Positions 2,079-63,965 of a stretch of 64,000 bases of DNA are shown one piece after another. The notes under the pieces are model-generated. The model made no database searches. It saw only the letters and a program-made list of their open reading frames with translations, and was not told the DNA's origin. Position numbers and translations under genes: made by a program. The DNA is from Tubulanus polymorphus (Eukaryota; Animalia; Nemertea). Location of the stretch: assembly GCF_964204645.1 (NCBI RefSeq), contig NC_134031.1, forward strand, positions 17,223,807 through 17,287,806, written 5' to 3'. Numbering within the stretch: the stretch's first letter is position 1; each line of letters opens with the position of its first letter.

Positions 2079-2348
2079 CAGGGTGGCCACTGACCTGGAA
2101 AACTCATTGAATCCGCAAAAATCAGGGAAAACTCTATTTGACTAATTCTGACTAAAAACCTGGAAAACTCAGGGAATTTGGATATGTTATTGCCCACACG
2201 TTTCTTTATCAAAACGTGATTCATAAAAAATGAATAAATTTTAACATTTTAAACCTAGAAATTTCTCGGGATTTATTCAGGGAAATTATTCTGTTATAAC
2301 ATGGAAAACTCTGGGGAATTTTTAAATTAGTGGAAAGAGGCCACCCTG
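2079..2348. mobile_element. Non-autonomous DNA transposon (MITE) in the region 3' of the kazrin stop codon
   Basis: Terminal inverted repeats CAGGGTGGCC / GGCCACCCTG with internal repeated GGAAAACTC and CAGGGAA motifs. Confidence 0.7.
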
Positions 2349-2438
2349 TAATCGGATTCGAACATTCTACACAAATATGTAAATACAAACATGAACGAAT
2401 GCGGAATGTTGAAATATAACAGATATTCTCTCTACCAT

Positions 2439-5400
2439 TTATACTGCTGTGCCTATTTTCAGCTCTTCCTGGCTGTGAGATCTTTGGTCGTTCGTGCCGT
2501 GCATGAATATTTCCTCGGGCATGGCAGCCAGTTCCGATTTGGTCCGTCTTCCGAAAGCTCTGCCAAGGGAGCCCTAGAAATAAATCGGAATATCGTAGCA
2601 AATTAGAACCAAGAAAATCGTCTTATTTCGAAATTACGGATGTCTCGTACATACTCTGAAACTTATGCGCTTTTTTGGTCCCTCTTGAGAAGCATCTCCG
2701 CCTCCTCCTTTGAACGAGCGCTCAAAAGCTCGGCCAAGTGATCCACCACTTGAAGTGCCTTTCTTTCTGCCGGGCAGTGTAAATGTTGTTCCCAAAGCGT
2801 ACCTAAAATTGTTGAAATATACATTAAACCCTTTACAGCCTAAAAGGATTATTCTAAGAATGAAGGTTTCGATATTGGCCGATAACTGGGAAGAGACTGT
2901 ACCATTCCTATGGTTTCACACTGTGTAAATGTTAAAAGTCTAACGTAAATCTTTTTTGATGCCAAAAAAATCTGCATTTGAACTAAACAATCTGATGCCC
3001 GTTTACACTCCATATTGTGGGTACTCAAAGAACAATAAACACATCTAAGAGAAAGCTATTTCATTATTGCTAAACTAATATTAAGGAGAAAGATTCACAA
3101 AGCTAACATCAATAAGTGAAGAAATCCCCTTTCTGAATTGATAAAGCAATTTTTCTTCTATTGAACGCACATGGAAATGTCTAGAGAAAAATCTTAGCTT
3201 GCGTAATGAATGGTAGATAAGTGATAAATAATGAACGTGGTCGAGTGTTTATTCTCGATGATCGTAGTGAATTATGAGAGCGAGTGAGATTTAGAGCCAT
3301 GCATATTCAGTCTAGCATTGAATCTAAGATATGTCAGGTATATCAGGCATGTATGATGATGTTTTCTGAGATGAAGCCGACGACCAATCAATATCAATTG
3401 AGAGTTTATTTCGTGAATTTGCCATGCTAGACTACTAGAATAGAACATATACAAACTAGAAAATATACAGTACTGTAAGCAGAATACACTCGAAATGTGC
3501 AGGTAAAAAGGCATTGGAAATTGTGGACGGATAAATTTCGAAGCTAATCTTAGTTTGATTCCGATGCCTTTTTTTTAAATTAATGCTACCATACGCAGTC
3601 ATTTATTTCTATACCTTCGCTTATTTTTCACTTTTGCTGCAATTCTAAGATACAGGTATAATGATAATATTTCATTTAATGTAACGAATGAAAGTATAAA
3701 TCCGCGCATTATCCATCGAATACGGGTCATTTCTATCTCGTGAACACGTCTCGAGTCGTACTCACCGAGCCGGTTTGATAAGATTATCGAACTCCTGCGT
3801 CAGATGTCTGTGAACGTGCGATTTCGACGGCGGGATGGCTAAGGCAACGGCCAATGCATCGGCGTTGAAGGACGGCTCTAAAACCATCAAAGCACCGTGG
3901 ACTCCGGCATCAATCAAATTACTCGCATATTCCTGTAGAAGAAAGATGTTGGCATACACTGGTCCAAATAAATATCAAAATTGAGATCAAACTTTCGTTT
4001 GCTGAACTCAAAGATTTCACTTATGTTTATATTCTATAAAATCCTATGACAAACGCTTTTTCCTTGGAATCAAAATGTTCTAGTTCATTATCAAGTAATA
4101 GGACCTGTCTACAATAAACACCTCTCCACACGGTGTTGTAGAAAGGTTTTACTTTTAAGTGTACTACTTACCCCTAAATCTATAGTTTCAATCCATCGTA
4201 TAAGACGCTTATTTGTCCAAACAAGTGGATCACAGTTATATATTTCACATTCTTGTCTTCTTTGAGCGAGAGCCTGAATGAGAGCAGAGATTTATGAACA
4301 ACATATGAATTTCGAAATAACTGAGACCGATCTTCTTGAAACACACCTCTTTGTCAAAATTATTCTTTCGCAATAGCTCGACTGCGTGAAGAATGCTAGC
4401 GTGGTGAAATTTCCTGTGAATGTTCACGTGTTTTTCGAGGTCTTTCTTCGACAAGGAGTTCAACGTACGACCGTCGATGAGGTGCTCAATGAATACAGAC
4501 CTGTACTGCTTGAGTCCTACGTCTTCTAAAAACACTTGCGACACCCAAACGTTGTCGATTTGGGATATCTTCGGGTATTTACTGCAAAAGAAATAAATGA
4601 TTATTTCGAATATGTTCTTTTTTACAATTGATTTAACCAGAAATTTTCGTCGATAAGTCATATCTTAAACATTGAAACTGTGAAATGAAATCAAATATTG
4701 ATTGATACTTCTTATTCTTAGAACGAGAAAATGAGAATTTTCGAATTTATGCGTTATTTTCACACGTTCTGTAAACGCTTACATGTTGGACGGTTCTCTT
4801 AATTCTTCAATCGCCAGACGAATTTTCCGCCTGTGCAAGTGACTAGTAAATTTAAATGCCGTATCCAGTTCCGAATCACTCATTTCCAGTAATACCTGAG
4901 CAAAAACGAGAAATCCAACTTAATATAAGGTAAAACTTAAATAGATACGGTAAAATTGGTAAACGATTGCTGCTCACCTTCCCACTTTTGATATTCGAAG
5001 CGCACATTGGTCCATATCGAGGCATGTTCAGCGTAATTTCGAGCCACGATAGAACATGCGGAGCTTTCCACTGCGTGATCGGTAACTCGGTCGCTTGAAT
5101 CGCCAGCGCTGTCTTTTCCTGCACGTTGTCGTCGCAAATCAGAGAAACGCACGGAGAAGGGTTTTCACCTGTTCAACAGAGAACAGTTTATCGTCGGTTA
5201 CATGGTTAATAGTAGTAAGCAGTGTTTTCAATAAGAGCCAGGTTCCAGGTCCCAGACCCGTCTGCCTTTTCTAAAGGACTCGCCCGTTTTTTCAAACCAG
5301 CTTTCGTTTCAGGTACTGTGACATATTATATTATGGGACCCTCCTGTTTTTCAACGGGACCTGGCTTGTTAATTTCTTATTGAAAACACTGGTAAGGCTG

Positions 5401-8400
5401 AGGCAGAAGTAAGTACTTCCGGGCAATTTTAGATCAAAAAAGTACACACTTTTTAAGCACTTGTAAGGTAAAAATGACACTTCTTAAGATTCAGGGCAGC
5501 CAAAAGTAACAATTCATTGAAATATGAAAGGAAATGTTAAAATTAATCAGTCATCAACAGTAGGACCCTCAGTAACAGTTTCATTGGCTCCTTCAGTCTT
5601 TCGACCATGGATAAACAGCGCCGCAGGGAGTTCAGTTTAAATCCTAGCGTGTCTCTGAGCTCGCCTCAGAGTGGCTTTTCTCATTATAAAAGAGTAAGAT
5701 ATACTGAAAATCAGGAACAGTTGGCAGCTCTGAAGACAGCAGCCCTCATCCATAACGTACAATCATAAAACTAACTTGGGATACCCTGAGTCAAGTGGAC
5801 ACTGGCTATGAACCCTGTATCATTTTTTATGTCCACCCTAATGAAGGTTTCGATGACACCTCTAACGTACCATCTGTGTATGAATCAACAGCAAACGATC
5901 GCCGGTTTTTTGCGCGACTGAATGCCCTCGTAAGCGATCCGAAACTATTCGTCAAACTGATCAAACTTCCGCGTTTCTTCTTTTCCTGGCTGTGATCCAA
6001 CAATTCGGCTGCTGTCACTGTGTTGTCCTTGCTGCCTTCGTTAGTGATTACATTTACAGCATTGCTTCTTAACTCTATATCGAAATGAAAATAGACCATT
6101 AAAAATAGCGTCCCTACAGATCAGCCATTCCTGGATATGCGGAGTTTTAAAAGCGTTTGAAAATTTTGAGGAAACGCCTGCATCACTTTCATATAAGGAG
6201 TTTCAAGCATTTTGCACAAATCAAAGGAGTTTCAAGCACCTTTAAAGGCATTTTCCATTTAGAAGGAGTTTTTAAGGAATCAAGGAATTGTAGGGAACCT
6301 GAATAAGGAAACTACGGTCATTTCCCGAAGCAGCGATGTAGATAAGAACTTACCAATATTAGATTTACATATTATGTCTGATTTCAGAGTAACGTGCGGT
6401 GGGTTTTCCGTATACGGTGGTAAGTGCTCCTCGCTTGGCGTATATACATCAGTTCCTGATGAGAATCCCGTGTCCGATAGGCTCGCTGGCTTGAATTTCT
6501 GTTTCTTGGACTTTTGAAGTTCAGAAACGTGTTCTTTAACCTTGTTAAGGAGAAAAACAGTATCTTGTGAAACTGTGAAGCAAATATTTGGTTCGAATTG
6601 TATTCCTAATTAACACTATTTTTCTTGACACCAGTCCCAGGACCCTGAATATGAAAAATGTACCTCTTCTAACTCTTTCTGTAAATTTTTGATGAGTAAA
6701 TCTTTGCTATCCATGTCGGTCTTCAGGGCAAGAGCTCTTTCAGTCGATTCATGAGCTCGCTTAAGAAGCTGCCATTTTTCCCGCTCACATTCTTCTTTCT
6801 CAAGGGCAAGCTGAAATTTTTTTCGAAAGTACACAAATCGATCAATATGTTGTGTTCATTCAGGTCCCTACAGATCGGTCATTCCTGTAATATGGAGTTT
6901 TAAAGGAGGAAATTTCAAATTTCGAGGAAGTGCCTGCATCACTTTCATATCGCAATTGGGGTACAGTTTTTAATTTCAGTAAAATCATTAATTTGGTGGT
7001 GTTGTAAGTAGGTTTTTATCCGATACACTACTAAACTTGGATTCTAATTCGGTAACTGCCTATTTGGGTTAGGAAAAAATCCTGATCCCAACTGTATCGA
7101 TTAAGTTCAATGTACAACTAGAAACATTTCTAAAATTGCCTATTTCTCAAAACTGAAGGAGTTTTTGGCATTTTGCACAAATCAAAGGTGTTTCAAGCAC
7201 CTTCAAAAGCAATTTCTGTTTAGAAGGAACTTTTATGTAATCAAGGAGTCGTAGGGACCTTTTTATTATTTTCACAGAACCTAACTATTTTTTTCTAAAC
7301 GACAAACCTGTTTCACAGCGTTGTCATTATCTTTCATCCTTTGTTCGAAATTACGAATGAAATCTCGCAATTCGGACTCCTTATCTTCGAGTGTGCCGTA
7401 GAGTTGTTTCATCTGACTGAGTAGCTCAACCTTCTCCGCCTTCAATCTTTTACGATCGGCTTTCATAGCTAGAAAAAACAAACATCAAGACTCATTCTTC
7501 AAACTCAATTTTTGCCCATGGAATTTGAAATCTTAGATTCCAGAACCACCTAGCATTCACACTTGATTATTCTGCCCCTGCTAGAATTTAGCTGGACCGG
7601 GTCCAATGTTTTTGGATGGGTCAAACAGACACAGACCCATTTGGCATCAGTGTGAACGGATGGCCCAGATCAAAAACACTTCTGTGATCGCAGCTTTGAT
7701 CGGCTACTCCTTACAGGAAAGCATATGTTACAGATTTATTAGTGAATGAGCCCTCACTGCGTAGATACCATACCTTGTAATGCTTCTTTAGCATGCAACA
7801 ATTCCTGTTGATATTTCAGAAGTTCCAGTTTCAGGTCACTGAGACTCGGTTGTTGGCTGCAGAATGACGCGGCCGTACTCGCTCTGCGTAATTCGTCGAT
7901 TTCTTTCATGTGTTCATTTAATTTCGCTTGCAGTTTGTTATTTTCGTCGCGTAAATGCTGCAGTTCGTTGTCGGTGTTCGTTATTTTGTTCGCTGGAAAA
8001 TGAACGAATTACTCTTTGATACGTAGCAAAGTGAAAACCATCGACTGCGACGAAAACTATTTTCATCGTGGAAAATTAAGTTCAGTTGACTTGACTCGTT
8101 AAATCTGTACCGATCACAGGGGTTCATCATGGAGGGTCTTTAATCAAAGATATACCACAGTATTATCATCATCCCCAGCAGGGATTCGAGCCTGATGGCA
8201 TCGAGACTCGCCACGGTACGAAACCCCGCCACACTAGCTCCAGTGCGCAGCTACCACGATGTCATTATTATTCGCCATATTAGTCAGATATCTCGTTTTA
8301 TTTCAGCCCGGGTTTTTTTGTTTATGGTTTATCCGTGAAATTTGCCACAATAATCTGATTGGTGCTGCAAGTGCCCGTTCTAGTGTGGCAGGGTTTCGTG

Positions 8401-12215: not shown

Positions 12216-15200
12216 ATGACCACGAAAAGCGTGAAATTCCAGCGAGAGGTTTCCACATCCTCGTCGAGTAACAAAACACCGAGGATAATATCACCGAGAC
12301 GAAATCGACAGTTTGTGGCTACGAAAATACCGCAACGAAAAATATCGACAGAAGAGGCGGAAGAGCAACAGAAAATGCTGCTGATTGGCTTGTGTTTAAG
12401 ACAGGTAACACTGCGCTTTCCAAAGCCCAGTTTTAGAGCCAGTTCCATCATATTTGTGGTTTAAAGTGTGAGTTTATATTTTTGTAAAATTGAAAAACAT
12501 GTCAAGTCCGACTACAGTCTCTAGATGAACGGACATCAGTTCCATCATAGTTGTGGTGTAAAGTATGACCTCATTCTAAAACGTTTGAAAAAAAAGGCTG
12601 ATTTTAACTTAAGTTAAATTCGTAACGTTTTCATATCTCCGCTACTAACTTAATCAACAACCGTAGTCGTGAGGTTCTCTGGAGACAAAAAGTCACCGCA
12701 TTGTCGCGAATTTGTAATTTTGTTTTTGTTTTACCAGTCGGATGCTGATCGGCTTTATTTCCTTCACATCATTGATTGATAATTTTTGATAACTCTTTTT
12801 TTCAAATTATAGTAATAGACGAATGTCAAACATTTTACACCCCTGCTTTTTTGTCATCATACTCATGGCGTAATCGCTTCCCAGATAGATAACGCACCTC
12901 ATACCTATGACACATTTATATAGAATTGCTATAAAGTTATCAAATTAATGAAATTTTGTTTGAAAACATCTAAAAAATTCAACAGAAAAGGTATTTTTCC
13001 CAGATTTCGTCTGACTGTTACCCAACGCTCGATCGACAACTGGAAGAAACGTCGTTGCTAGTGAACTCGATCACGCTACGTCTGCATTACGAACTCTCTC
13101 GGGACGCCGTCTGCGGACAGATCCTCAAACAAGTCCGACTAGCCGGAGAAACTGCCTACAAGGTCGAAATGATTGACACGTCAACATACGAATGTAGACT
13201 GTTCGTGGAAGAATTCATTTTTCCGAAGATGTTTCGGGTGCGTTAAATTCAAAAGTAAATGCTAAGTAACTGGAGTGTCTCCAGTTACGTACTATGTGGT
13301 GTGTGCGTAGTGAGAATGTGAGTGTATGTGGTGAGGGATTTTAGACCTAAAGCCTTTTTGGCTTTTCTTTAATTCCTCACAAAGATGATTGTTACACTAT
13401 GTAAAAGCTATCGTTTTCTGTTATAATCTATGTACGTACCAATTATCTATGCAAAATCAAAATTAAATCGTACTGATTTGAAATCGTAGTTATTTATTGG
13501 ATGATTTTTCCCCTATTTCATTCGAATTGACTTTCACCTTTTTTCCATTATTGCATGTTTCCTACGAACGTTTGTTTCGAGGGTGCGTAGCTTCGCCGTT
13601 TCATTGTGTTTAATGGATCTTTTCTCAATTGAATTTGTAGATAGAATGTGGCATCACCGATCGAATACCCCTTGGTTTCCTGTGCCATAAATTAAACACC
13701 GACGAGTTGACGGCCGAAGAACGAATAACGGCTCGACTTGTCTGGTCAAATATGCTGAACAGCCAAGGTTACTTGTCGTCGAGAAAACTTTCGAATCGTG
13801 CTTACGCCGGTAAATAAAAAAACAAACCACTTTCAACTTCAATCATAGTTTTAACATTTATCAACATCTTTAGATCGAGATATTTTTAGGGATAAGTTCG
13901 CACAACCGAAACTTGTTCAATTTACCCGAAGCGTGTATTCTCAAAACGTTTTGGTCAATAGAAACTACCAAGTTCTCCATAAGCTAAACTTGTCACCGGT
14001 AATGCGTAATGATTGTTAGCTTTCGGCGAACGTGTTTGTGTGTACAGATGTTTGAATTTTTTTAACCATATCCATTAATATCGAATAGTGACCCGCGGCG
14101 TAACGATCTTGAGGAGAGAAATACGACTCGAATTAATAGCGCAAAATTTGCATATTCAATATCTGTTATCCAAGTAACACACATGAAGTACAAATCTCTT
14201 GGATGGCTTCTCGCTTTTTAAGAAATATAAATTACGTTCTTCCTTTCCGATGGAGTTCTCAGTATCATCTCATTGAATGCGCAAAAACACTGTTGTAGAA
14301 AACTGTTTACCCAAAAGGAGCAATTATTTGTGAAGTGTTACTTGAAAAAATGATTTAATTTCGGACATAAGTTATTTAGCTACGGGCTGATTCTGTTTTG
14401 TTTTATTTGATTCCAGGATTTGTGACGGCCTTAAAAAGAAATGATCTTGCTTCAATAACTCAGTCACACTCGAAAGATTCGAGCGGGCGATTAAAATGGG
14501 TTATTCTCGACACAAAAACGGGCACAAAAATCAACCTTCACGTGATGTTGTCCATCCGAGGAACTGGTGTACTGAAGGGAGTTCGGCTGCAACACGCATT
14601 GCCTCGCCAGATGCCTTATAGCACGATCGGAAAAGAACATTTACGACGTATCACAACACAAATTGAAGACGGTCAGTATATTTGGTACGCCGATTGCACA
14701 AGACCGGCTAGACACAGTTTCGAAAAGCATACGAAACTTGGAATAATCGACAGTTGCTGGACGCTTTATTACGACCCCTTACAAACCGAACTCGTTGCCG
14801 ATACGAAAGCTATCGGTCTTCAATTCACGATCGAAGATTTCGTCAAATTTGTTATTTTACTTAAGTCGAAGTATTCACAACTGCGAGATATTAGCCTTAG
14901 GGTATTTGAAACCGTCGCTCTGTGGCAACACAAGAAACATGGCGCTAAGTGGATGGATTTAGAACCTGTCGATGGCATTATGAATATCATCCAAGCCTGC
15001 CTGTCAGATTTTGAGAATGCCGCATGTCCTGATTTCCTCCAACCGAATCGAAATACGCTTTCCGCGTACTCTAAAGCTACTCTCAAGTCGGCAGCCGATT
15101 GCCTTCGAACATTAGCATCCGATTTTGAAAAGAGACCTCGGTTTTTGATGAGATTTCTGGGCTGCCAAAAACGGCGATACGCATTTCTGAAGGAAGACGA

Positions 15201-15663
15201 ATCGGGCGACGAAGACGACAGCGGTTCAACGACACCAGTCAGCAGCAGCGGCAATGGAAATCACGTGAAAAATATCGATTCAGAACACGAGGAAGTTTTC
15301 ATAGCGGAGCGTCATTCTTTATGTAATGCGAGTGTGGAAAATGTTGAAAACGAAGGATACGTCGCTGAATTTGAAAAGGTGAGCATGTCTAGTTTGGATG
15401 GTCTCCGCGATGTAGGTGACGAAATCAGCGATGAGCCTAATGCAGACGATTCAGAAGTCTTGGAGGAAAACGGTGGTAATTGTGATGATGTTGTTTATGA
15501 ATCCGATTTTAACGAAGAAAATGCCAGCGTTGCAGACGATTCGGGAGTGGAAGAAAATATAGAAATTGTTCGGGAAATTGATGGAGATTTTGATCGTTCA
15601 AACGTTCGCCCCGGCCTTTCGAAAATGGATGAAATCTTCGAAAATGATGCAGCTGTAGACTAG
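12216..15663 (+). CDS. Mab-21/cGAS-like receptor (cGLR)-fold protein, about 612 aa, probably catalytically inactive. Exons 12216-12404, 13004-13237, 13641-13809, 14417-15663
   Basis: Four exons join in frame (phases 0,0,1; 1839 nt) with canonical splice sites. Mab-21 family motifs occur in the right order: spine helix, VRLAGETAYKVEMIDTSTYECRLF (GS...EFD region), PLGF, W...GYLSSRKL (cf. Mab-21 GYLSARKI), INLHVMLSI strand, WTLYYDPLQTEL (WRxSF..E), VKFVILLK...ISLRVFETVALW (LK...SY.LKT..W), KW, CPDFLQPNRNTL (PHYFxPxxNL). Confidence 0.8.
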
Positions 15664-37068: not shown

Positions 37069-40000
37069 ACACAGTTCCACAATTGTAAGTTAGATGTTTT
37101 TTAAGAATCAGTATTACGGGAACAATACTTATATGCCTGTTTGTAAGCTACGATTGTATGAATATCGATGTCAAGATTTCAATTTTGTGTCAAATAAATC
37201 TGAACCGCCAGTTCAACGTCTGGCTCGTCGTTATCAGTCTCTCGGTCATTTCTATATAATATCTTAAACGGTCACATAGATACGAGTTCGATGAATTCAT
37301 AGTGCATCCGATATTTCATCACCGCTTTGGTCGCACTTCGCTTCGCACAGAAATTGAAACTATACGCCATTTTAAATATCAACTCATTAATCTGAACAGC
37401 AGGTGATATGGCCGTGTGTATAAATTCGTAATTTTCAGTTAGTAAACCAACGCCGTTATCATTTTGATCCCGTAGCGAATTGACGCCGTTGCCTGATGAG
37501 TACATCGATCCGCGATCGAAAATCGAATACTCTACATTTTTATTCCGTAATTCATTACTGAATGTTTAAAACGCCGTTTCATCCTCGCTCAGGCGCGAGT
37601 TTGGATTTTCAACTACGCACGTATTCATTTTATCTCAATCATTTTTTTAAGTTCTCAATTTGCTTACCATCATCATCCCTCCCCCAGCAGTATGTATAAG
37701 AAAATAAACAACAACTATAAAATATGTATTGGCGTCTGCTAAATCTGTTCCGATCAAAACGTGAAATCAGAAGTGAATATCATGCCGAACTTTGATTAAA
37801 AGAAGCCATATTTCATGAAATACATACAAAATAGACAGCTCCCGGTGTACCAAACGCTATGTGATTTGACTGGTTAGCATGTTATATCGCAATTAAGTGC
37901 ATTAACGCCAAAGTTCACAGGAATCGGAAGCATAAATGAACTGACGGAAATGGTCCTGCTCAAATGAAACCTTAATTACACTGTTGCAGGTGTAATTATC
38001 TTCAGCTATTGCCGACTTTGCGTAGGCTGGGATGAATCGTATGCGGTATATTTGGTTGAATATAATTTGTACGGCCAAAATCATGGACATATTCACTACC
38101 TGCGGAGGCAATACAGATCTGACGGATATTCTATGCTTCTGTGGCATGACCATTTTTTTTGTGGTTTCAAAGATCCTCGGGTCAGTTGCTCAACCGGTGC
38201 CCAAAACGTTATCAAAAAATTTCAACTATTTTCGGGATAGCAGACCTATCTCTCAGTCTGTATCCTGAATCCAATCAGTGACATTAAGGCTTGTGTAAAT
38301 TCATGTTTTCAGGGCTGCATTCAGCTTATTTTTTCTATTTTTTTTTTTCACAGGGAACGTATACGGCACGTCGTAACGTTTGCCGTCATTCAAAGTCAAG
38401 GAAATAAATTGAAATCATAATCCAATTAAATTGGCACGCAGCACTAATGAAAGTCGCCTAGACAAGTCAACGTCGGAAAAATCAAAAACAAATAAACGCT
38501 ACTGAATATGCTGCTTGTAAGAAAAGTGAGGATGATTTACAAAAATATTTATAGTTCGTTCCATTGATATTTCATATACTACATATAAATTGGTATTATT
38601 GAATTATCATCATTGTAGCAAGTTTGTACCGTTATTTGAGACACAGAGGTAGGCGCATGGCACATGGTGGATATTATATAGATGAACACCATTGTCCGCT
38701 TTAACATCTTCGGATAGGCTGCGACAAAAAGTCATCAAGAACGCAAACACATCATGTTGTGCGTTGGTTATTTCAACAAATATCATTATGGAAGTAGCAA
38801 TGTCATTTGTTTTGTTGGGCAAATAACGCATGTAATCGGTACAAACCGAGCGAAGGCTGCGCAGACTGTGCGTGCCCTTCCCCGGATCCTGTCGCGACTT
38901 GACCATTGATTTATCGCCGCTGATGTATCCAGTCTGCTTTCCGAAACATCGATCAGTGTTCGTATCGGCGCGATGAAAAATACCTCGCAAAATACGAGTG
39001 TAATACATCGATCGAGACACATCCCCGAATTCATAAGCGATATGCCGAAAAAATCTTAAAAATCTTAAATTGAAAAATACATCTTACATTGGCTTTGAAA
39101 TTCACACTGAAATATAAGAAGTAGAATGTATATATTTAGCACAGCAACGCGACACCTCATCAAACATACCACATTACATGGAAGAATTTTGATCCGACGG
39201 TCGGAAAGTTCATGTTCCCTCCTTTTGTGACGACTCAATCATATATACTATAGATGACACTATCTATGTGTATACATGTATAAACGTCTATATCTATGAA
39301 TGACAAAAATGATATTTTTTGTCGAATAATGTCTTTGACCCAGTGAAAACCGTAAAAATAATGTTTGTATACATTGATGCATATAGTATGCGTATTTACG
39401 TAAGGGCTTTTATTTTTCCTAACATTTTTGATAAATCTTAATGATTATTTTTGAAAGGATGTTCTCTACATCATCAATCAGGGCTAAACTAACTGCCAGT
39501 CAATTCAATTCAATAAATCGATGTACTCAAATTTTAGATAACTTAATGTATCCCTTAAATTGCTTATATAATATTATCATTCATCGACGACAATGATAAG
39601 CAATACATGTGTCATTTTTCAAGGTGTCAATAAACTTTGTAGTTAGTTTTCTTTTTTTCTTTCATCTAGCGGTTTATCATTGAAAACGCGAGAGTTTACA
39701 GCTAGTAGGGAGAGTTCAGTTATTTTTGAAGTGAGATGACTATAATGAAGTATATCGGGTTGCAAGAGTTAGGCTCTTTCTGTGCGAACTGCTGCGGCGT
39801 TAAACAAACTTTGTTAAGATGACGCCACGGTTACATAATTGACTCGAAGGAGCCACACGCTGGTGAAATGAAAAGCGACACAGTATTCGCACACCAGTGC
39901 CGTGTTAATGAGCACGTATTTCAGCGTTACTGGCATGGTCGTCAGCGTCCATTATCCCTCCACGCAGCCGGAACCATGGTCTTTTCCTCCGTCGAACCCC

Positions 40001-41394: not shown

Positions 41395-41824
41395 CTTGGT
41401 TAAACAAATACCGTTATTCCTTTAACATCCCTCTCCCTCTCCCTCTCCCTCTCCCTCTCCCTCTCCCTCTCCCTCTCCCTCTCCCTCTCCCTCTCCCTCT
41501 CCCTCTCCCTCTCCCTCTCCCTCTCCCTCTCCCTCTCCCTCTCCCTCTCCCTCTCCCTCTCCCTCTCCCTCTCCCTCTCCCTCTCCCTCTCCCTCTCCCT
41601 CTCCCTCTCACTCTCTCCACGGAATGAAACAGGACTTGGTTAAACAAATACCGTTATTCCTTTAACATCCCTCTCCCTCTCCCTCTCCCTCTCCCTCTCC
41701 CTCTCCCTCTCCCTCTCCCTCTCCCTCTCCCTCTCCCTCTCCCTCTCCCTCTCCCTCTCCCTCTCCCTCTCCCTCTCCCTCTCCCTCTCCCTCTCCCTCT
41801 CTCCACGGAATGAAACAGGACTTG
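41395..41824. repeat. Two (CCCTCT)n tracts, each with the same unique flanks (tandem duplication, first unit 240 bp)
   Basis: CTTGGTTAAACAAATACCGTTATTCCTTTAACATC at 41395 and 41635; CTCTCCACGGAATGAAACAGGACTTG follows both tracts. Confidence 0.95.
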
Positions 41825-54443: not shown

Positions 54444-55469
54444 TTACAGTCGTTTTCCTGCTCTTCCACACGTCAAACACCAGATTAGCGTCTTGGCGAA
54501 TCCTCGCCGGATTCCTAGATATACGAACATGTTAATCATCGCGTTTATCGCGTGTATAAGCTGACCAGAATGGAACGGGCGTATTTTTACGTTAGGAATC
54601 GCCGGGATTATTGTATTTATCAATCCCAACACGTATTCCATGAAATAAACGCAATTCAATACTAAAATCGTAATAGTTATTTGTAGACCTTGGCTGCTGT
54701 TCGTGTTTTTAGGATCTTTATCTTGGGTTAGTTTTTGCCTGTCTTTAAAAGATCTGCGTAACAGAAATAACATGTGAATGTTACATATGATAACAACTGT
54801 ACCGGGTATAACGCTTATGACCACTTTCCCGAAAAAGAAATCGTACCACAGGCTGTAATCCTTATTTTTCAAAAGTAACAATCTTTGACGCACGAATGAA
54901 CATTTTTCTCCGGGTTTCTCGCGAAACATTTCCACGTCCCAGTAGGTCGGTATATCGAATAGAATGGTCAAGATGAAGACCATGGCCGAAACGCCGCGTG
55001 CACTTTTTAGCGTGCACAGCTTTTTCGCCGACAACGGGTTTCTGATCGCGATATAGCGATCCAGCGACATTGCAAATAACAACCACGCGCTGGTGTTCGT
55101 TGTCAGTTGAAAAATCGTGTCCACCACCGAATAATAGTGCAGATAATAATTCTGATACGAAGGGCTGTATTTGACTTTTCCAAATGGAAATCCGCGACTC
55201 AGAAGCATCAACTCCCGTCCAAATATTCCCGACAAACAGTTCACAGTATCGGCAATCGCAAGCGATTTGAGGTAGAATACACTGCTTCCTTGCAAAGACA
55301 TAACGTTGAGCACAATGAAAGAGAGGGAGTTAGAAAAGCTACCCACCAGATAGAGCAAGGCTCGAGACATTGTCATGATTACGCCATATTTGTAAGTCCC
55401 AGTTTCGCTGTAGCATAACGCATCAGGACTCGGGATAGGACTGGTTGCGTTTACCAACGCTGTCGTCAT
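54444..55469 (-). CDS. Intronless class A (rhodopsin-like) GPCR, FMRFamide/sex-peptide-receptor-like orphan, 341 aa
   Basis: Seven hydrophobic segments; TM1 GSFSN, TM2 YLKSLAIAD, TM3 SLDRYIAIRNPL, TM7 NAMINMFVY followed by helix 8 RRGF. Confidence 0.9.
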   Translation of the reverse strand: MTTALVNATSPIPSPDALCYSETGTYKYGVIMTMSRALLYLVGSFSNSLSFIVLNVMSLQGSSVFYLKSLAIADTVNCLSGIFGRELMLLSRGFPFGKVKYSPSYQNYYLHYYSVVDTIFQLTTNTSAWLLFAMSLDRYIAIRNPLSAKKLCTLKSARGVSAMVFILTILFDIPTYWDVEMFREKPGEKCSFVRQRLLLLKNKDYSLWYDFFFGKVVISVIPGTVVIICNIHMLFLLRRSFKDRQKLTQDKDPKNTNSSQGLQITITILVLNCVYFMEYVLGLINTIIPAIPNVKIRPFHSGQLIHAINAMINMFVYLGIRRGFAKTLIWCLTCGRAGKRL

Positions 55470-56379: not shown

Positions 56380-57350
56380 CTTTATACAATGATTTTGATA
56401 TTCTTAAAGCAATGGTTGGCACGATTAACATACGAGTTGTTAAGTTTCCTTGAAAAATAGCACACTTCAAAAAAAACCAAGAAAATAGCACACTTCGAAT
56501 TTTATCATCGCATACAAAAATCTTTTACAATGATTTTCGATATTTTACATGCAATGGCTAGCATGATTATTTTGCAAGTTGTAAAATTCCTTGCTTGAAT
56601 AAGTTAGAAAATAGCACACTTCGAAATAGATTCGATTATCATCAAATTAAATACACAAAATCTTTTTACAAGGATTTCGATATTTGTCATGCAATGGCTA
56701 GCATGATTATTTTGCAAGCTGTAAAGTTCCCTTGCATGAACAAGTTAAAAAAGCACACTTCGAAATAGATTTGATTATCATCAAATACACAAAATCTTTT
56801 ACACGGATTTCGATATTTTACATGCAATGGCTAGCATGATTATTTTGCAAGCTGTAAAGTTCCCTTGCACGAACAAGTAAGGAAATAGCACACTTCGAAA
56901 TAGATTTGATTATCATCAAATACAAAAAATCTTTTTGCAAGGATTTCGATATTTGTAATGCAATTGCTAGCTTGCAAGATAGGATCATTTTGCAAATTAT
57001 AAACTGTCCTTGCTCGGACAAGTCATAAAACATCACGCTTCGAAATAGATTTGATCACGTATATAATATCTTTTACAATGATTCTCGATATTTCAATGCA
57101 ATGGCTAGCACAATCGATTAGCAAGTTGTAGAATTTCCTCGCTTGCACGAGAAAGAAAATAGCGCACTCCGAAATAGATTTGATTATCATCACATAGAAA
57201 AAACCTTTAAAAATGATTTTCGATATTCTTAATGCAATGGCTTGCACAATCGGTTTGCGAGCGATAAAGTTGTGTTCCTCGTTTGGACAAGAAAGAAAAC
57301 AGCACACTTCGAAAGAGTTTGAATCATTTCTACGAATACAAAATCTTTTC
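56380..57350. repeat. Degenerate tandem array of roughly 7 units of about 130-145 bp
   Basis: Recurrent AAATAGCACACTTCGAAATAGATTTGATTATCATCA and GATTTCGATATTT...TGCAATGGCTAGCA motifs. Confidence 0.85.
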
Positions 57351-58235: not shown

Positions 58236-58689
58236 ACTACGTATGTCGTATATAAGTTCTTGGTACATACAGTTCGGGAAACACTGTTACCGAGAAATTG
58301 TTCGTTAGATATTTCTTTCGGTTCATAGAAAGTGGACATCAAAACTGATTATCTAGCTGTGCTGATAAATTCACGAAATCGCGTAGTTACCATGAAATAG
58401 TTGCTGTTGTGCCGCATCATGGTGACTTCAAATTACAAAACATACATATAACAGAGCAATGGCTTGGTGACAACAACGATAGTAATAAATAGTTACGATA
58501 AGATGCCGTTTTGCCTTATGTAAATTACGTGACCATTACAATATCATAATAACAATCTAGACATGATATACATATATACGTCACGTATAAAGTAGTTGCC
58601 GTTGTGCCGTTGCAAAAAATGACTCAGTAATCCCAGTACTACATTATCTTACGGCATGTACATGTTTTCAAATTTGGCTCAAATATGAA

Positions 58690-61600
58690 CAAATTTCATT
58701 GAAATACGAAATTAACATAATTCGAACTAAAAGATGCTGTTGTGCCATTGCAAATTTGACTCAAAATGTCAAATATATATCATCAAAATACATAATCAAC
58801 ATGAATTTCACTAGAAGATGCTGTTGTGCCATTACAAATTTGACTCAAAATGTCAAATATACCATCAAAATACAAAATAAACATGAATTTCACTAAAAGA
58901 TGCTGTTGTGCCATTGCAAATTTGACTCAAAATGTCAAATATATCATCAAAATACATAATCAACATGAATTTCACTAGAAGATGCTGTTGTGCCATTGCA
59001 AATTTGACTCAAAATGTCAAATATACCATCAAAATACAAAATAAACATGAATTTCACTAGAAGATGCTGTTGTGCCATTGCAAATTTGACTCAAAATGTC
59101 AAATATATCATCAAAAAACAAAATAAACATGAATTTCACTAGAAGATGCTGTTGTGCCACTGAAAATATCATCATGATTTCATTGAAAAAAAAAGATTAA
59201 CATGATTCTAACTTGAAGATGCTGTTGTGCCATTGCAAATTTGACTCAAAATGTCAAATATATAATCAAAATACATAATCAACATGAATTTCACTAGAAG
59301 ATGCTGTTGTGCCATTGAAAATATCATCAAGATTTCATTGAAAAAAAAATTAACATGATTCTAACTAGAGATGCTGTTGTGCCATTGCAAATTTGACTCG
59401 AAATGTCAAATATACCATCAAAATACAAAATAAACATGAATTTCACTAGAAGATGCTGTTGTGCCATTGAAAATATCATCAAGATTTCATTGAAAAAAAA
59501 ATTAACATGATTCTAACTAGAGATGCTGTTGTGCCATTGCAAATTTGACTCGAAATGTCAAATATACCATCAAAATACAAAATAAACATGAATTTCACTA
59601 GAAGATGCTGTTGTGCCATTGAAAATATCATCATGATTTCATTGAAAAAAAAATTAACATGATTCTAACTAGAAGATGCTGTTGTGCCATTGCAAATTTG
59701 ACTCAAAATGTCAAATATATAATCAAAATACATAATCAACATGAATTTCACTAGAAGATGCTGTTGTGCCATTGAAAATATCATCAAGATTTCATTGAAA
59801 AAAAAATTAACATGATTCTAACTAGAGATGCTGTTGTGCCATTGCAAATTTGACTCGAAATGTCAAATATACCATCAAAATACAAAACAAACATGAATTT
59901 CACTAGAAGATGCTGTTGTGCCACTGAAAATATCATCATGATTTCATTGAAAAAAATAGATTAACATGATTCTAACTTGAAGATGCTGTTGTGCCATTGC
60001 AAATTTGACTCAAAATGTCAAATATTTCATCAAAATAAGAAAAACATAAATTTCACTAGAAGATGCTGTTGTGCCATTGAAAATATCATCAAGATTTCAT
60101 TGAAAAAAAATTAACATGATTCTAACTAGAAGATGCTGTTGTGCCATTGCAAATTTGACTCAAAATGTCAAATATTTCATCAAAATACATAATCAACATG
60201 AATTTCACAAGAAGATGCTGTTGTGCCATTGAAAATATCATCATGATTTCATTGAAAAAAAAAGATTAACATGATTCTAACTTGAAGATGCTGTTGTGCC
60301 ATTGCAAATTTGACTCAAAATGTCAAATATTTCATCAAAATAAGAAAAACATGAATTACACAAGAAGATGCTGTTGTGCCATTGAAAATATCATCAAGAT
60401 TTCATTGAAAAAAAATTAACATGATTCTAACTAGAAGATGCGGTTGTGCCATTGCAAATTTGACTCAAAATGTCAAATATATCATCAAAATACAAAATAA
60501 ACATGAATTTCACTAGAAGATGCTGTTGTGCCTTTGAAAATATCATCAAGATTTCATTGAAAAAAAAATTAACATGATTCTAACTAGAGATGCTGTTGTG
60601 CCATTGCAAATTTGACTCGAAATGTCAAATATATCATCAAAATACAAAATAAACATGAATTTCACTAGAAGATGCTGTTGTGCCATTGAAAATATCATCA
60701 TGATTTCATTGAAAAAAAAAGATTAACATGATTCTAACTTGAAGATGCTGTTGTGCCATTGCAAATTTGACTCGAAATGTCAAATATTTCATCAAAATAA
60801 GAAAAACATGAATTTCACTAGAAGATGCTGTTGTGCCATTGAAAATATCATCAAGATTTCATTGAAAAAAAAGATTAACATGATTCTAACTTGAAGATGC
60901 TGTTGTGCCATTGCAAATTTGACTCGAAATGTCAAATATTTCATCAAAATAAAAAAAACATGAACTTCACTAGAAGATGCTGTTGTGCCATTGAAAATAT
61001 CATCAAGATTTCATTGAAAAAAAAAGATTAACATGATTCTGACAAGAAGATGCTGTTGTGCCATTGCAAATTTGACTCAAAATGTCAAATATATCATCAA
61101 AATACATAATCAACATGAATTTCACTAGAAGATGCTGTTGTGCCATTGAAAATATCATCAAGATTTCATTGAAAAAAAAATTAACATGATTCTAACTAGA
61201 GATGCTGTTGTGCCATTGCAAATTTGACTCGAAATGTCAAATATACCATCAAAATACAAAATAAACATGAATTTCACTAGAAGATGCTGTTGTGCCATTG
61301 AAAATATCATCATGATTTCATTGAAAAAAAAATTAACATGATTCTAACTAGAAGATGCTGTTGTGCCATTGCAAATTTGACTCAAAATGTCAAATATATA
61401 ATCAAAATACATAATCAACATGAATTTCACTAGAAGATGCTGTTGTGCCATTGAAAATATCATCAAGATTTCATTGAAAAAAAAATTAACATGATTCTAA
61501 CTAGAGATGCTGTTGTGCCATTGCAAATTTGACTCGAAATGTCAAATATACCATCAAAATACAAAACAAACATGAATTTCACTAGAAGATGCTGTTGTGC

Positions 61601-63965
61601 CACTGAAAATATCATCATGATTTCATTGAAAAAAATAGATTAACATGATTCTAACTTGAAGATGCTGTTGTGCCATTGCAAATTTGACTCAAAATGTCAA
61701 ATATTTCATCAAAATAAGAAAAACATAAATTTCACTAGAAGATGCTGTTGTGCCATTGAAAATATCATCAAGATTTCATTGAAAAAAAATTAACATGATT
61801 CTAACTAGAAGATGCTGTTGTGCCATTGCAAATTTGACTCAAAATGTCAAATATTTCATCAAAATACATAATCAACATGAATTTCACAAGAAGATGCTGT
61901 TGTGCCATTGAAAATATCATCATGATTTCATTGAAAAAAAAGATTAACATGATTCTAACTTGAAGATGCTGTTGTGCCATTGCAAATTTGACTCAAAATG
62001 TCAAATATTTCATCAAAATAAGAAAAACATGAATTACACAAGAAGATGCTGTTGTGCCATTGAAAATATCATCAAGATTTCATTGAAAAAAAATTAACAT
62101 GATTCTAACTAGAGATGCTGTTGTGCCATTGCAAATTTGACTCGAAATGTCAAATATATCATCAAAATACAAAATAAACATGAATTTCACTAGAAGATGC
62201 TGTTGTGCCATTGAAAATATCATCATGATTTCATTGAAAAAAAAAGATTAACATGATTCTAACTTGAAGATGCTGTTGTGCCATTGCAAATTTGACTCGA
62301 AATGTCAAATATTTCATCAAAATAAGAAAAACATGAATTTCACTAGAAGATGCTGTTGTGCCATTGAAAATATCATCAAGATTTCATTGAAAAAAAAGAT
62401 TAACATGATTCTAACTTGAAGATGCTGTTGTGCCATTGCAAATTTGACTCGAAATGTCAAATATTTCATCAAAATAAAAAAAACATGAACTTCACTAGAA
62501 GATGCTGTTGTGCCATTGAAAATATCATCAAGATTTCATTGAAAAAAAAAGATTAACATGATTCTGACAAGAAGATGCTGTTGTGCCATTGCAAATTTGA
62601 CTCAAAATGTCAAATATATCATCAAAATACATAATCAACATGAATTTCACTAGAAGATGCTGTTGTGCCATTGCAAATTTGACTCAAAATGTCAAATATA
62701 CCATCAAAATACAAAATAAACATGAATTTCACTAGAAGATGCTGTTGTGCCATTGCAAATTTGACTCAAAATGTCAAATATTTCATCAAAATACATAATC
62801 AACATGAATTTCACAAGAAGATGCTGTTGTGCCACTGAAAATATCATCATGATTTCATTGAAAAAAAAGATTAACATGATTCTAACTTGAAGATGCTGTT
62901 GTGCCATTGCAAATTTGACTCAAAATGTCAAATATTTCATCAAAATAAGAAAAACATGAATTTCACTAGAAGATGCTGTTGTGCCATTGAAAATATCATC
63001 AAGATTTCATTGAAATAAAATTAACATGATTGTAACTAGAAGATGCGGTTGTGCCATTGCAAATTTGACTCAAAATGTCAAATATATCATCAAAATACAA
63101 AATAAACATGAATTTCACTAGAAGATGCTGTTGTGCCATTGAAAATATCATCAAGATTTCATTGAAAAAAAAAATTAACATGATTCTAACTAGAGATGCT
63201 GTTGTGCCATTGCAAATTTGACTCGAAATGTCAAATATATCATCAAAATACAAAATAAACATGAATTTCACTAGAAGATGCTGTTGTGCCATTGAAAATA
63301 TCATCATGATTTCATTGAAAAAAAAGATTAACATGATTCTAACTTGAAGATGCTGTTGTGCCATTGCAAATTTGACTCGAAATGTCAAATATTTCATCAA
63401 AATAAGAAAAACATGAATTTCACTAGAAGATGCTGTTGTGCCATTGAAAATATCATCAAGATGCTGTTGTGCCATTGCAAATTTGACTCGAAATGTCAAA
63501 TATATCATCAAAATACAAAATAAACATGAATTTCACTAGAAGATGCTGTTGTGCCATTGAAAATATCATCATGATTTCATTGAAAAAAAAAGATTAACAT
63601 TATTCTAACTTGAAGATGCTGTTGTGCCATTGCAAATTTGACTCAAAATGTTAAATATTTCATCAAAATTAAAAAAACATGAATTTCACTAGAAGATGCT
63701 GTTGTGCCATTGAAAATATCATTGCAAATTTGACTCAAATGTCAAATATTTCATCAAAATAAAAATAAACATTATTTTCACTAGAAGATGCTGCTGCGCC
63801 GTTGCAAGTATAGAAGATTTCATTTAAAAAAAGAATTAACATGATTCTAATTTGGAGATGCAGTTGTGCCGTTACAAATTTGACTCACATATCAAAGATT
63901 TCATCAAAATACAAAATTAACATGATTTTTCAATTAATTCAGAAGATGCTGTTGTGCCGCTGCAA
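58690..63965. repeat. Satellite DNA: about 82-bp (A) and about 70-bp (B) monomers sharing the core AGAAGATGCTGTTGTGCCATTG, mostly as AB dimers of about 152 bp
   Basis: Core spacing alternates 70 bp (60363-60433) and 82 bp (60433-60515); monomers are near-identical in the centre and diverged at both edges. Confidence 0.97.

Follow-up and report, generated by a model that had tools for sequence, protein, structure and literature searches.

We identified a genuine single-copy gene of four exons in the genome of the nemertean Tubulanus polymorphus, which is predicted to encode a 612-residue protein of the Mab-21 fold that belongs to a divergent family and most likely works without catalysis; we put the probability of this reading at about 0.7. 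The gene lies on the forward strand of the 64-kb window (the whole stretch of DNA that was analysed, on contig NC_134031.1), and a genome search found it only once in the 268-Mb Tubulanus genome. Judged by the residues at its active-site positions, the Tubulanus protein has most likely lost enzymatic activity, and an incomplete triad is common to the full-length members of the family.

The four exons, at 12216-12404, 13004-13237, 13641-13809 and 14417-15663 (189 + 234 + 169 + 1247 nt = 1839 nt), are separated by GT..AG introns and add up, in a frame check, to a single frame of 612 codons followed by TAG. An earlier note on this DNA had proposed an intact four-exon frame of about 612 residues, and the exon coordinates and the frame of this predicted gene model are as it stated. 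A pyrimidine tract precedes the acceptor in every intron, the GC content is 44-48 % in exons vs. 34-35 % in introns, and each intron contains 7-18 stops in each frame. Exon 1 (12216..12404, 63 codons, phase 0) starts with an ATG that has an A at -3, ends at the donor CAG/GTAACA, and codes for an N-terminal stretch that is basic and rich in Ser (pI 11) and for the beginning of the spine helix. This exon had no match in Pfam or family-profile searches, and it and its junction to exon 2 align weakly to the N-termini of the homologues, at the start of the spine helix; judged by these comparisons, it is the least certain part of the gene model. Exon 2 (13004..13237, 78 codons; acceptor tttttcccag/, donor CGG/GTGCGT) contributes the spine helix and, in the NTase core, a beta1-beta2 hairpin bearing the GS-equivalent position and triad positions 1-2; use of an alternative in-frame acceptor ahead of it (12985/12986) would add 6 residues. 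Exon 3 (13641..13809, 169 nt, phase-1 end) completes the N-lobe as far as the helix ahead of the central strands; exon 4 (14417..15663, 1247 nt including the TAG) codes for these strands, for the helical lobe at the C-terminal side and for an acidic tail. The fold region is basic (pI 9.6). The tail (15181..15660) comprises 160 residues, of which 48 are D/E and 9 are K/R (pI 4.05), a composition that makes it probably disordered; it is absent from the homologues, whose ends come soon after the Y-x-G motif, whereas the frame in the window stays open for these 160 codons. A donor-like AAG/GTGAGC at 15378/15379 could provide an alternative C-terminus. A possible fifth exon in intron 3 (13890-13998), with AG/GT ends and a Mab-21-looking translation, was rejected: neither its length of 109 nt nor its phase is compatible with the frame, it contains an in-phase stop and has no Pfam or family-profile match, and the homologues show no gap at this place.

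A family HMM made from eight foreign homologues, all of full length and none of them a window row, was compared to the complete set of 2909 segments that six-frame translation of the 64-kb window yields. The matches to exon 2 (profile 52-135, E 5.6e-6), exon 3 (profile 138-182, E 1.6e-4) and exon 4 (profile 244-479, E 8.6e-32) are colinear, and the next match in the window has an E-value of only 0.16, so that the family signal is more than chance. That next match, an exon-2-like segment at 39313-39438, was considered as a second copy of the gene and attributed to chance, given that no counterpart of exon 3 or exon 4 accompanies it and that the genome search found a single copy. Intron positions are conserved as well: in the homologous gene L007, located on an ENA contig, the exon-3 equivalent begins at the identical residue and ends in the same phase-1 Gly codon, followed by G/ITMAIKR vs. 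G/FVTALKR in the window.

Sequence comparisons and structure models both indicate that the predicted fold of the encoded protein is the two-lobed Mab-21/cGAS nucleotidyltransferase fold, as the earlier note had claimed: the Pfam, hhalign and AlphaFold/Foldseek checks all point to Mab-21/cGAS. Searches and models for the window protein were run exon by exon, and the full-length Owenia homologue P0008 served as a stand-in for the whole fold. Of the Pfam domains that define the superfamily (PF03281 + PF20266), Mab-21_C (HhH/H2TH-like; 14869..15108, + strand) has a borderline match: the six-frame scan of the genome scored it at 25.1 bits, for a cut-off of 24.1, and hmmscan of exon 4 at 21.8 bits (E 2e-4). 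Exons 2 and 3 alone had no Pfam match; they are colinear with family members, including Owenia P0008, which passes PF03281, the entry for the N-terminal NTase core, at 27.5 bits. Alignment by hhalign to the canonical Mab-21 of the same genome gave a probability of 96.4 % in one comparison, with coverage from the beta2 strand onward, and of 97.8 % in another (E 5.7e-12, 14 % identity). Comparison of the family profile to the PDB returned Sp-cGLR1 (1.7e-14), MAB21L1 (1.1e-13) and MB21D2 (2.4e-10). The AlphaFold model of the Owenia homologue (pLDDT 81.6, pTM 0.82) has MAB21L1 as its top Foldseek match (E 1e-14, TM 0.78) and matches MAB21L1, cGLRs, cGAS and MiD51 across ~435 columns. The model of residues 1-254 of exon 4 (pLDDT 80.8) matched only Sp-cGLR1, MAB21L1, cGAS, MB21D2 and MiD51 in Foldseek, with a cGLR as the best match (2e-6), and the nearest clusters in the ESM Atlas are Mab-21 throughout.

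Comparison of the active-site positions to those of human cGAS and MAB21L1 shows that the catalytic triad is incomplete in the window protein. Gly-Glu (13145..13150, + strand) occupies the position of cGAS G212-S213, 13 residues ahead of triad position 1; this spacing equals that of human cGAS and that of D60-N61 in MAB21L1, and L007 likewise has G-E-T-A. By alignment, the G-E register would correspond to the GS motif. Thr-Tyr-Glu (13184..13192, + strand) is placed on E73-F-E75 of MAB21L1, and hence on E225-F-D227 of cGAS, by profile-profile alignment to the genome's canonical Mab-21; the family alignment and hmmsearch anchor the C-R that comes next, and in hhalign, E110 and Q112 of the Owenia homologue fall on the E-F-E of the canonical Mab-21. 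The third triad position (cGAS D319, MAB21L1 Q169) is a His (14539..14541, + strand), which in the 97.8 % hhalign alignment, with the window exon as master, aligns with Q221 of the genome's canonical Mab-21, equivalent to human Q169, and which sits inside a predicted strand (37-42) of the exon 4 AlphaFold model. The mapping of MAB21L1 residues onto cGAS (Q169 = D319; E73/E75 = E225/D227) is taken from PMC4897736. The predicted place of the exon 2 residues in the active site rests on alignments of sequences and of profiles, with identities of 20-30 %, and on the homologue model. The motif coordinates in the earlier note (G48-E63 of exon 2 at 13145-13192, His codon at 14539-14541) are exact, and its reading of Ser to Glu, first acid to Thr and third Asp to His was confirmed as G-E, T-x-E and His. 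Li et al. 2023 (PMC9980059) define cGLRs by the active-site motif h[QT]GS x8-20 [DE]h[DE]h x50-90 h[DE]h; the window sequence, which reads A-G-E ... T-Y-E-C ... L-H-V, does not match it. In addition, the donor-NTP contacts E238, K255, Y272 and K275 of MAB21L1, mapped through hhalign and PMC4897736, read Q, I, R and E in the window; these replacements in the C-lobe, as aligned, speak against a nucleotide being bound in the canonical pocket.

On sequence grounds, the gene is assigned to a small, very divergent and fast-evolving family: a search of 1.84 billion representatives returned only 19 matches at E <= 1e-3, the best of them with 30 % identity (E 2e-15). The members named so far come from the annelids Owenia and Capitella, the brachiopod Lingula and the nemertean Tubulanus, and all are annotated as 'uncharacterized'; a word-index protein homologue search with exon 4 or with a family alignment returned the query alone, as the index cannot reach the family. 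The proteins of Lingula anatina (LOC106155915/LOC106155913), Owenia fusiformis (CAH1786134/5) and Capitella teleta (CAPTEDRAFT_199633) are colinear with the window protein over exons 2-4 at 20-30 % identity and share with it GxGWPxG..LQHALPKQxPY, DGQSxW, SCPxFLxPNxN and an incomplete triad; they differ from it in the acidic tail, which is found only in the window, and the Lingula homologue has an acidic insertion within the fold. The most conserved motif of the family, with the consensus IxGxGWPxGxxLQHALPKQxPY, lies at 14554..14619 (+ strand) and reads IRGTGVLKG...LQHALPRQMPY in the window; it is an ordered loop in the exon 4 AlphaFold model (pLDDT 81-93), and the replacement of the family W-P by V-L could reflect relaxed constraint. 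The invariant family positions (G71, G85, W114, C203, N212) are all retained in the window. The triad positions, by comparison, read T/E/H in the window, E/Q/N in Owenia, T/D/N in Lingula, E/L/V in P0004, E/T/A in Capitella and T/E/R in L007, and the third position in 21 sequences is mostly N, with D just once. No full-length member retains a complete triad, so that its loss is ancient and common to the whole family. A mildly basic charge is frequent, though not universal, among the members, and an inference of nucleic-acid binding from it was rejected, the comparison being too weak.

In a six-frame scan of the Tubulanus genome, we found three Mab-21-fold loci only: the canonical Mab-21, which is highly conserved and lies on a different contig (triad E/E/Q), LOC141905477 (apparently E/D/N, read by eye; BLASTP against the canonical Mab-21 was uninformative) and the gene studied here. 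The scan yielded no locus with a complete triad, no cGLR with a complete motif and no STING_LBD candidate, each of which is a weak negative. In line with the species identity, an ORF of a neighbouring Mab-21-fold family is 100 % identical to a RefSeq protein of Tubulanus polymorphus.

Following the earlier note, the gene can be read as a catalytically dead cGLR paralogue that would bind second messengers, act as a decoy or regulate cGLR-STING signalling in a dominant-negative way. The basis of this interpretation stood, namely an intact Mab-21-fold gene with the triad T/E/H and GE, whereas the roles derived from it are unsupported. The fold is the same as that of cGLRs, and tables in PMC9980059 list many cGLRs and STINGs for Capitella, Lingula and Owenia. 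However, the gene is about equally distant from every active cGLR (11-16 % identity) and no closer to cGAS and cGLRs than to MAB21L1, and the loss of the triad is common to the whole family, unlike what would be expected of a recently derived decoy. The replaced contacts speak against a nucleotide binder, and the weak negatives of the genome scan, with three Mab-21-fold loci and no STING, against a regulator of cGLR-STING signalling; with only these loci and no STING found, the decoy and nucleotide-binder ideas are unsupported, and we regard a dead cGLR paralogue as very improbable.

A protein that is still an enzyme, i.e., a nucleotidyltransferase or related transferase with a non-canonical centre composed, for example, of Glu, His and a neighbouring Asn, appears very improbable. 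One carboxylate is retained (E, 13190-13192), His can bind metals, the His and Asn share one face of the third strand in the exon 4 model, and the authors of the MAB21L1 study left activity with Gln at that position possible (PMC4897736). These points are countered by the variation of all three positions among family members, which leaves no conserved alternative centre, by the negative charge that GS to GE places at the triphosphate site, and by the replaced donor-NTP contacts. The most remote of the readings is a decaying or unexpressed gene copy with a frame that is open by chance; the V-L in place of W-P and a best identity to relatives of just 30 % would fit decay, but the 612 open codons extend over four exons with canonical splice sites, as against the 7-18 stops per frame in each intron, all invariant family positions are retained, and the single copy has no intact paralogue as a source.

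The preferred reading is that of a protein working without catalysis. The family keeps the fold scaffold and a loop (GxGWPxG..LQHALPKQxPY..DGQSxW), long and ordered, that follows the third central strand, whereas the triad carboxylates, the GS phosphate-binding motif and the donor-NTP residues of the C-lobe are not conserved; it is this combination that makes non-catalytic working most likely. The Mab-21 cage may then serve as a binding or scaffolding module, by analogy with MiD49/51, probably MAB21L1/2, and the shrimp Mab21 that activates IKK-epsilon. A more specific guess, with odds of roughly one in three, is that a polyanion or a partner protein would be bound by the basic fold together with the basic N-terminus, and that the species-specific acidic tail would fold back and cover this surface. 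A more far-reaching proposal, which we consider rather unlikely, is that the family represents old, cGLR-derived receptor or adaptor signalling without a nucleotide product, in which the conserved loop would be the effector or ligand surface, the pathway in Tubulanus would be independent of STING, and the acidic tail would gate the basic fold.

With these findings, a branch of the Mab-21/cGAS superfamily that is unstudied and narrow in its distribution, and that as a whole lacks the catalytic triad, gains a member from the nemerteans. For annotation, genes of this spiralian family are not to be counted as cGLRs, and the one conserved loop is the place to seek the function of the family. Knowledge of cGAS-like signalling is unchanged by the finding, and the outcome is fairly ordinary because many Mab-21-fold proteins are already known to be non-enzymes, those documented being MiD49/51, probably MAB21L1/2, ITPRIP-like proteins and shrimp Mab21.

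Among known systems, the cGLRs (Sp-cGLR1 8GJY, Tc-cGLR 7LT2, Cv-cGLR1 8GJW) and cGAS share the two-lobed fold with the window protein, with homology across the NTase core and helix bundle and in predicted structure (PDB profile, Foldseek); they differ from it in the active-site motif, and identity is 9-15 %. The named family homologues do not appear in the examined tables of PMC9980059. MiD49 and MiD51 are Mab-21-fold adaptors accepted as non-enzymes, and MiD51 is among the structural matches, with no match at E < 1 at the sequence level (family profile vs. PDB); MiD51 has an N-terminal membrane anchor and ADP in its pocket, whereas exon 1 of the window gene encodes no anchor, its longest hydrophobic run being 8 residues (by eye). 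Shrimp LvMab21-1/2/3, likened to the window gene by functional analogy alone, are reported to act by kinase binding, without nucleic-acid binding or cGAMP synthesis (PMC12928593), and precedents for non-catalytic Mab-21 proteins are described in PMC4897736, PMC12928593, PMC3926953 and PMC10732462. The best structural match of the family is MAB21L1/MAB21L2 (PDB 5EOG/5EOM). The gene is not an orthologue of MAB21L1/L2, because the genome has its own conserved canonical Mab-21 elsewhere; in place of the very high conservation and the E-F-E and Q of that group, the window protein shows 14 % identity to the canonical Mab-21. MAB21L1 retains E73, E75, E238, K255, Y272 and K275, whereas in the window protein a single one of these two acids remains and all four contacts are replaced. 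The third triad residue of MAB21L1 is, however, also non-acidic (Q169), and the W-P..L-P..P loop past the third strand is similar to that of the family.

The candidate gene of the palaeonemertean Tubulanus polymorphus, a ribbon worm, comprises four exons on the forward strand: exon 1 (12216-12404), running from an ATG start to the donor CAG/GTAACA; exon 2 (13004-13237), between the acceptor tttttcccag/ and the donor CGG/GTGCGT; exon 3 (13641-13809), between tttgtag/ and CCG/GTAAAT and ending in phase 1; and exon 4 (14417-15663), from gattccag/ to a TAG stop. As the earlier note had proposed, these splice into a single predicted frame, with canonical splice signals at all bounds and a total of 1839 nt, corresponding to 612 codons plus the stop; the motif coordinates that it gave (13145-13192 and 14539-14541) proved exact on re-reading the sequence. 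The GC content is 44-48 % in the exons vs. 34-35 % in the introns, each of which contains 7-18 stops per frame, and the gene is single-copy in a search of the 268-Mb, 77-contig assembly, whose contig 7 contains the window. The assignment of exon 1 and of its junction is tentative, drawing on their signals and on a weak match to the region where the spine helix of the homologues begins. An in-frame acceptor between 12985 and 12986, six codons upstream of exon 2, may be used instead. A strong donor-like site, AAG/GTGAGC, lies at 15378-15385 within the acidic-tail part of exon 4 and could yield an alternative C-terminus.

We built a family HMM from eight full-length foreign homologues and no window sequence, and compared it to the 2909 six-frame stop-to-stop segments that make up the whole 64-kb window. 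Exon 4 matched with E = 8.6e-32 (profile positions 244-479), exon 2 with E = 5.6e-6 (positions 52-135) and exon 3 with E = 1.6e-4 (positions 138-182), in the correct order and mutually adjoining; the next-best segment had E = 0.16. This short open segment, at 39313-39438 (+), bears a weak likeness to the part of exon 2 that encodes beta2 and lacks both partner exons and a second copy in the genome, so that the resemblance is probably due to chance. Through the homologous protein P0001, we located a eukaryotic contig, ctg32912l of the ENA assembly ERZ25069853, that carries at 2280-6825 a homologue with the three-exon core of the window gene; the gene caller recorded the last exon alone as a protein. 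The layout of this homologue (L007) matches that of the window gene: the exon-3 equivalent begins at the identical residue and ends in the identical phase-1 glycine codon, after which the last exon resumes with similar sequence. This shared layout is the best support that we obtained for the predicted junctions.

Searches and structure predictions for the window protein were run on single exons or on a full-length homologue as a stand-in. The Pfam comparison, performed exon by exon, bore out the proposed Mab-21 assignment in exon 4 only, and there at the borderline (Mab-21_C, 21.8 bits in hmmscan of the exon; 25.1 bits vs. a cut-off of 24.1 in the six-frame genome scan), with no Pfam match in the rest of the gene. 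An exhaustive phmmer search of 1.84 billion representative proteins yielded only 19 matches at E <= 1e-3, the best with E = 2e-15 and 30 % identity; those with a name come from Owenia fusiformis, Lingula anatina and Capitella teleta and are annotated as uncharacterized. Several family matches are recognized by Mab-21_C and one by the NTase model of Mab-21, and window exons 2, 3 and 4 align colinearly to full-length members.

The Mab-21/cGAS fold of the window gene is confirmed by profile comparisons and models. The family profile matched the PDB chains of Sp-cGLR1 (1.7e-14), MAB21L1 (1.1e-13), MB21D2 (2.4e-10) and Tc-cGLR (4e-6), and hhalign against the canonical Mab-21 of T. polymorphus gave a probability of 96.4 % when run with the family alignment and of 97.8 % (E = 5.7e-12) when window exon 4 was the master. 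The AlphaFold model of the Owenia member (pLDDT 81.6, pTM 0.82) retrieved MAB21L1 as the best Foldseek match (E = 1e-14, TM 0.78), followed by Tc-cGLR, Sp-cGLR1, cGAS and MiD51; that of window exon 4 (254 residues, pLDDT 80.8) retrieved proteins found with the Owenia model and nothing else, and an ESM Atlas feature search returned Mab-21 clusters only. The window gene is about equally distant from cGLRs and from MAB21L1, so that 'Mab-21-like' describes it at least as well as 'cGAS-like'.

The metal-binding positions E225, D227 and D319 of human cGAS correspond to E73, E75 and Q169 of MAB21L1, and the cGAS donor-NTP contacts E383, K414, Y436 and K439 to E238, K255, Y272 and K275 (PMC4897736). 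In these stretches, the canonical Mab-21 of T. polymorphus hardly differs from the human protein, and it can therefore serve as a bridge for mapping positions. By hhalign through this bridge, His 14539-14541 aligns to the Q169 position; Owenia E110/Q112 align to E73/E75, and family alignments anchored on a conserved Cys-Arg just downstream place Thr-Tyr-Glu (13184-13192) in the same columns. Gly-Glu (13145-13150) lies 13 residues upstream of Thr-Tyr-Glu, the spacing of cGAS G212-S213, so that the originally proposed register (GE, T-x-E, H) is upheld. At the four C-lobe donor-NTP contacts, the window gene has Q, I, R and E by the hhalign mapping, and these positions vary freely within the family. 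As far as sequence and models reach, the gene is supported as an intact, catalytically dead Mab-21 fold.

In the alignments, loss of the triad is family-wide and old. The three positions read T, E, H in the window gene, T, E, R in L007, E, Q, N in Owenia, T, D, N in Lingula, E, T, A in Capitella and E, L, V in the member P0004; among 21 sequences spanning the third strand, the third position is mostly Asn, otherwise R, T, V, A, Y or H, and Asp once only. L007 and the window gene share G-E-T-A and T-[FY]-E-C-R-L (T-F-E-C-R-L in L007). Conserved across the family are the scaffold residues G71, G85, W114, C203 and N212 (exon-4 numbering) and a long ordered loop that directly succeeds the third strand and reads GxGWPxG..LQHALPKQxPY, with DGQSxW next in line; the W-P of this loop is replaced by V-L in the window gene.

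Several other features were observed. A second divergent Mab-21-fold gene, on contig 5 at ~5.658 Mb, is RefSeq LOC141905477 (557 aa; Mab-21_C E = 8e-13), an uncharacterized T. polymorphus protein whose 100 % identity to the ORF identifies the species; it has a long Ser/Asp-rich insertion and, by eye, an apparent E-V-D with Asn in third position, and on this reading it too is incomplete as a cGLR. Within the window, an intronless 341-residue ORF at 54444-55469 (-) encodes a GPCR of the rhodopsin family, matching Pfam 7tm_1 at E = 2e-20 and the Srw-type chemoreceptor model at E = 1e-16, and an ORF segment at 4245-4661 (-) with a SAM domain (SAM_1 E = 3e-12) probably belongs, as a single exon, to a larger gene. 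A large AT-rich satellite occupies 58681-63462 (and 56499-57246, 63574-63929), with a 152-bp unit in ~29 copies (93 % matches), higher-order periods of 305 and 457 and GC down to 28-31 %; it is immediately preceded by a related array of 133/274 bp. A (TCCCTC)n microsatellite at 41428-41801 (~62 copies) explains why the GC skew is strongly negative in the 40-42 kb bin.

The earlier note had envisaged a dead cGLR acting in cGLR-STING signalling as a decoy, a dominant-negative form or a nucleotide/second-messenger binder, roles for which we find no support. Decoys and dominant-negative forms have usually arisen recently from an active paralogue, whereas no active gene is closely related to the window gene, in whose family the motif was lost long ago. 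One would expect a protein that binds nucleotide in the canonical pocket to retain at minimum the C-lobe contacts, which MAB21L1 keeps, but all four are replaced here. An exon-by-exon six-frame scan of the T. polymorphus genome found no STING ligand-binding domain and only three Mab-21-fold loci (canonical Mab-21, LOC141905477 and the gene under study), a blank that is weak evidence and does not equal absence. On the other side, the tables of PMC9980059 list numerous cGLRs and STINGs in species holding other family members, so that co-existence is possible elsewhere; the named members are missing from those tables, as expected from the active-site motif filter of that study.

The window protein is most likely a non-catalytic binding or scaffolding protein. 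By composition, its N-terminal extension (pI 11) and fold portion (pI 9.6) are basic and its C-terminal tail, which the homologues lack, is acidic (160 residues, 48 D/E, pI 4.05); fold charge across the family is not uniformly basic. Our best specific guess, to which we give about one chance in three, is that the acidic tail would mask a basic binding surface. Non-catalytic Mab-21-fold proteins are already a known kind, and the gene, unsurprising to a specialist, adds a nemertean member to an uncharacterized, narrowly distributed branch; it merits correct annotation and perhaps attention to the conserved loop. The proposed role has good precedent within the fold: MiD49/51 are reportedly accepted as non-enzymes with a Mab-21 fold, and there are further examples in MAB21L1 and shrimp. 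In MAB21L1, no activity was seen and nucleotide was bound outside the active site (PMC4897736), and direct binding by three shrimp Mab21 proteins reportedly activates IKK-epsilon with neither nucleic acid nor cGAMP involved (PMC12928593).
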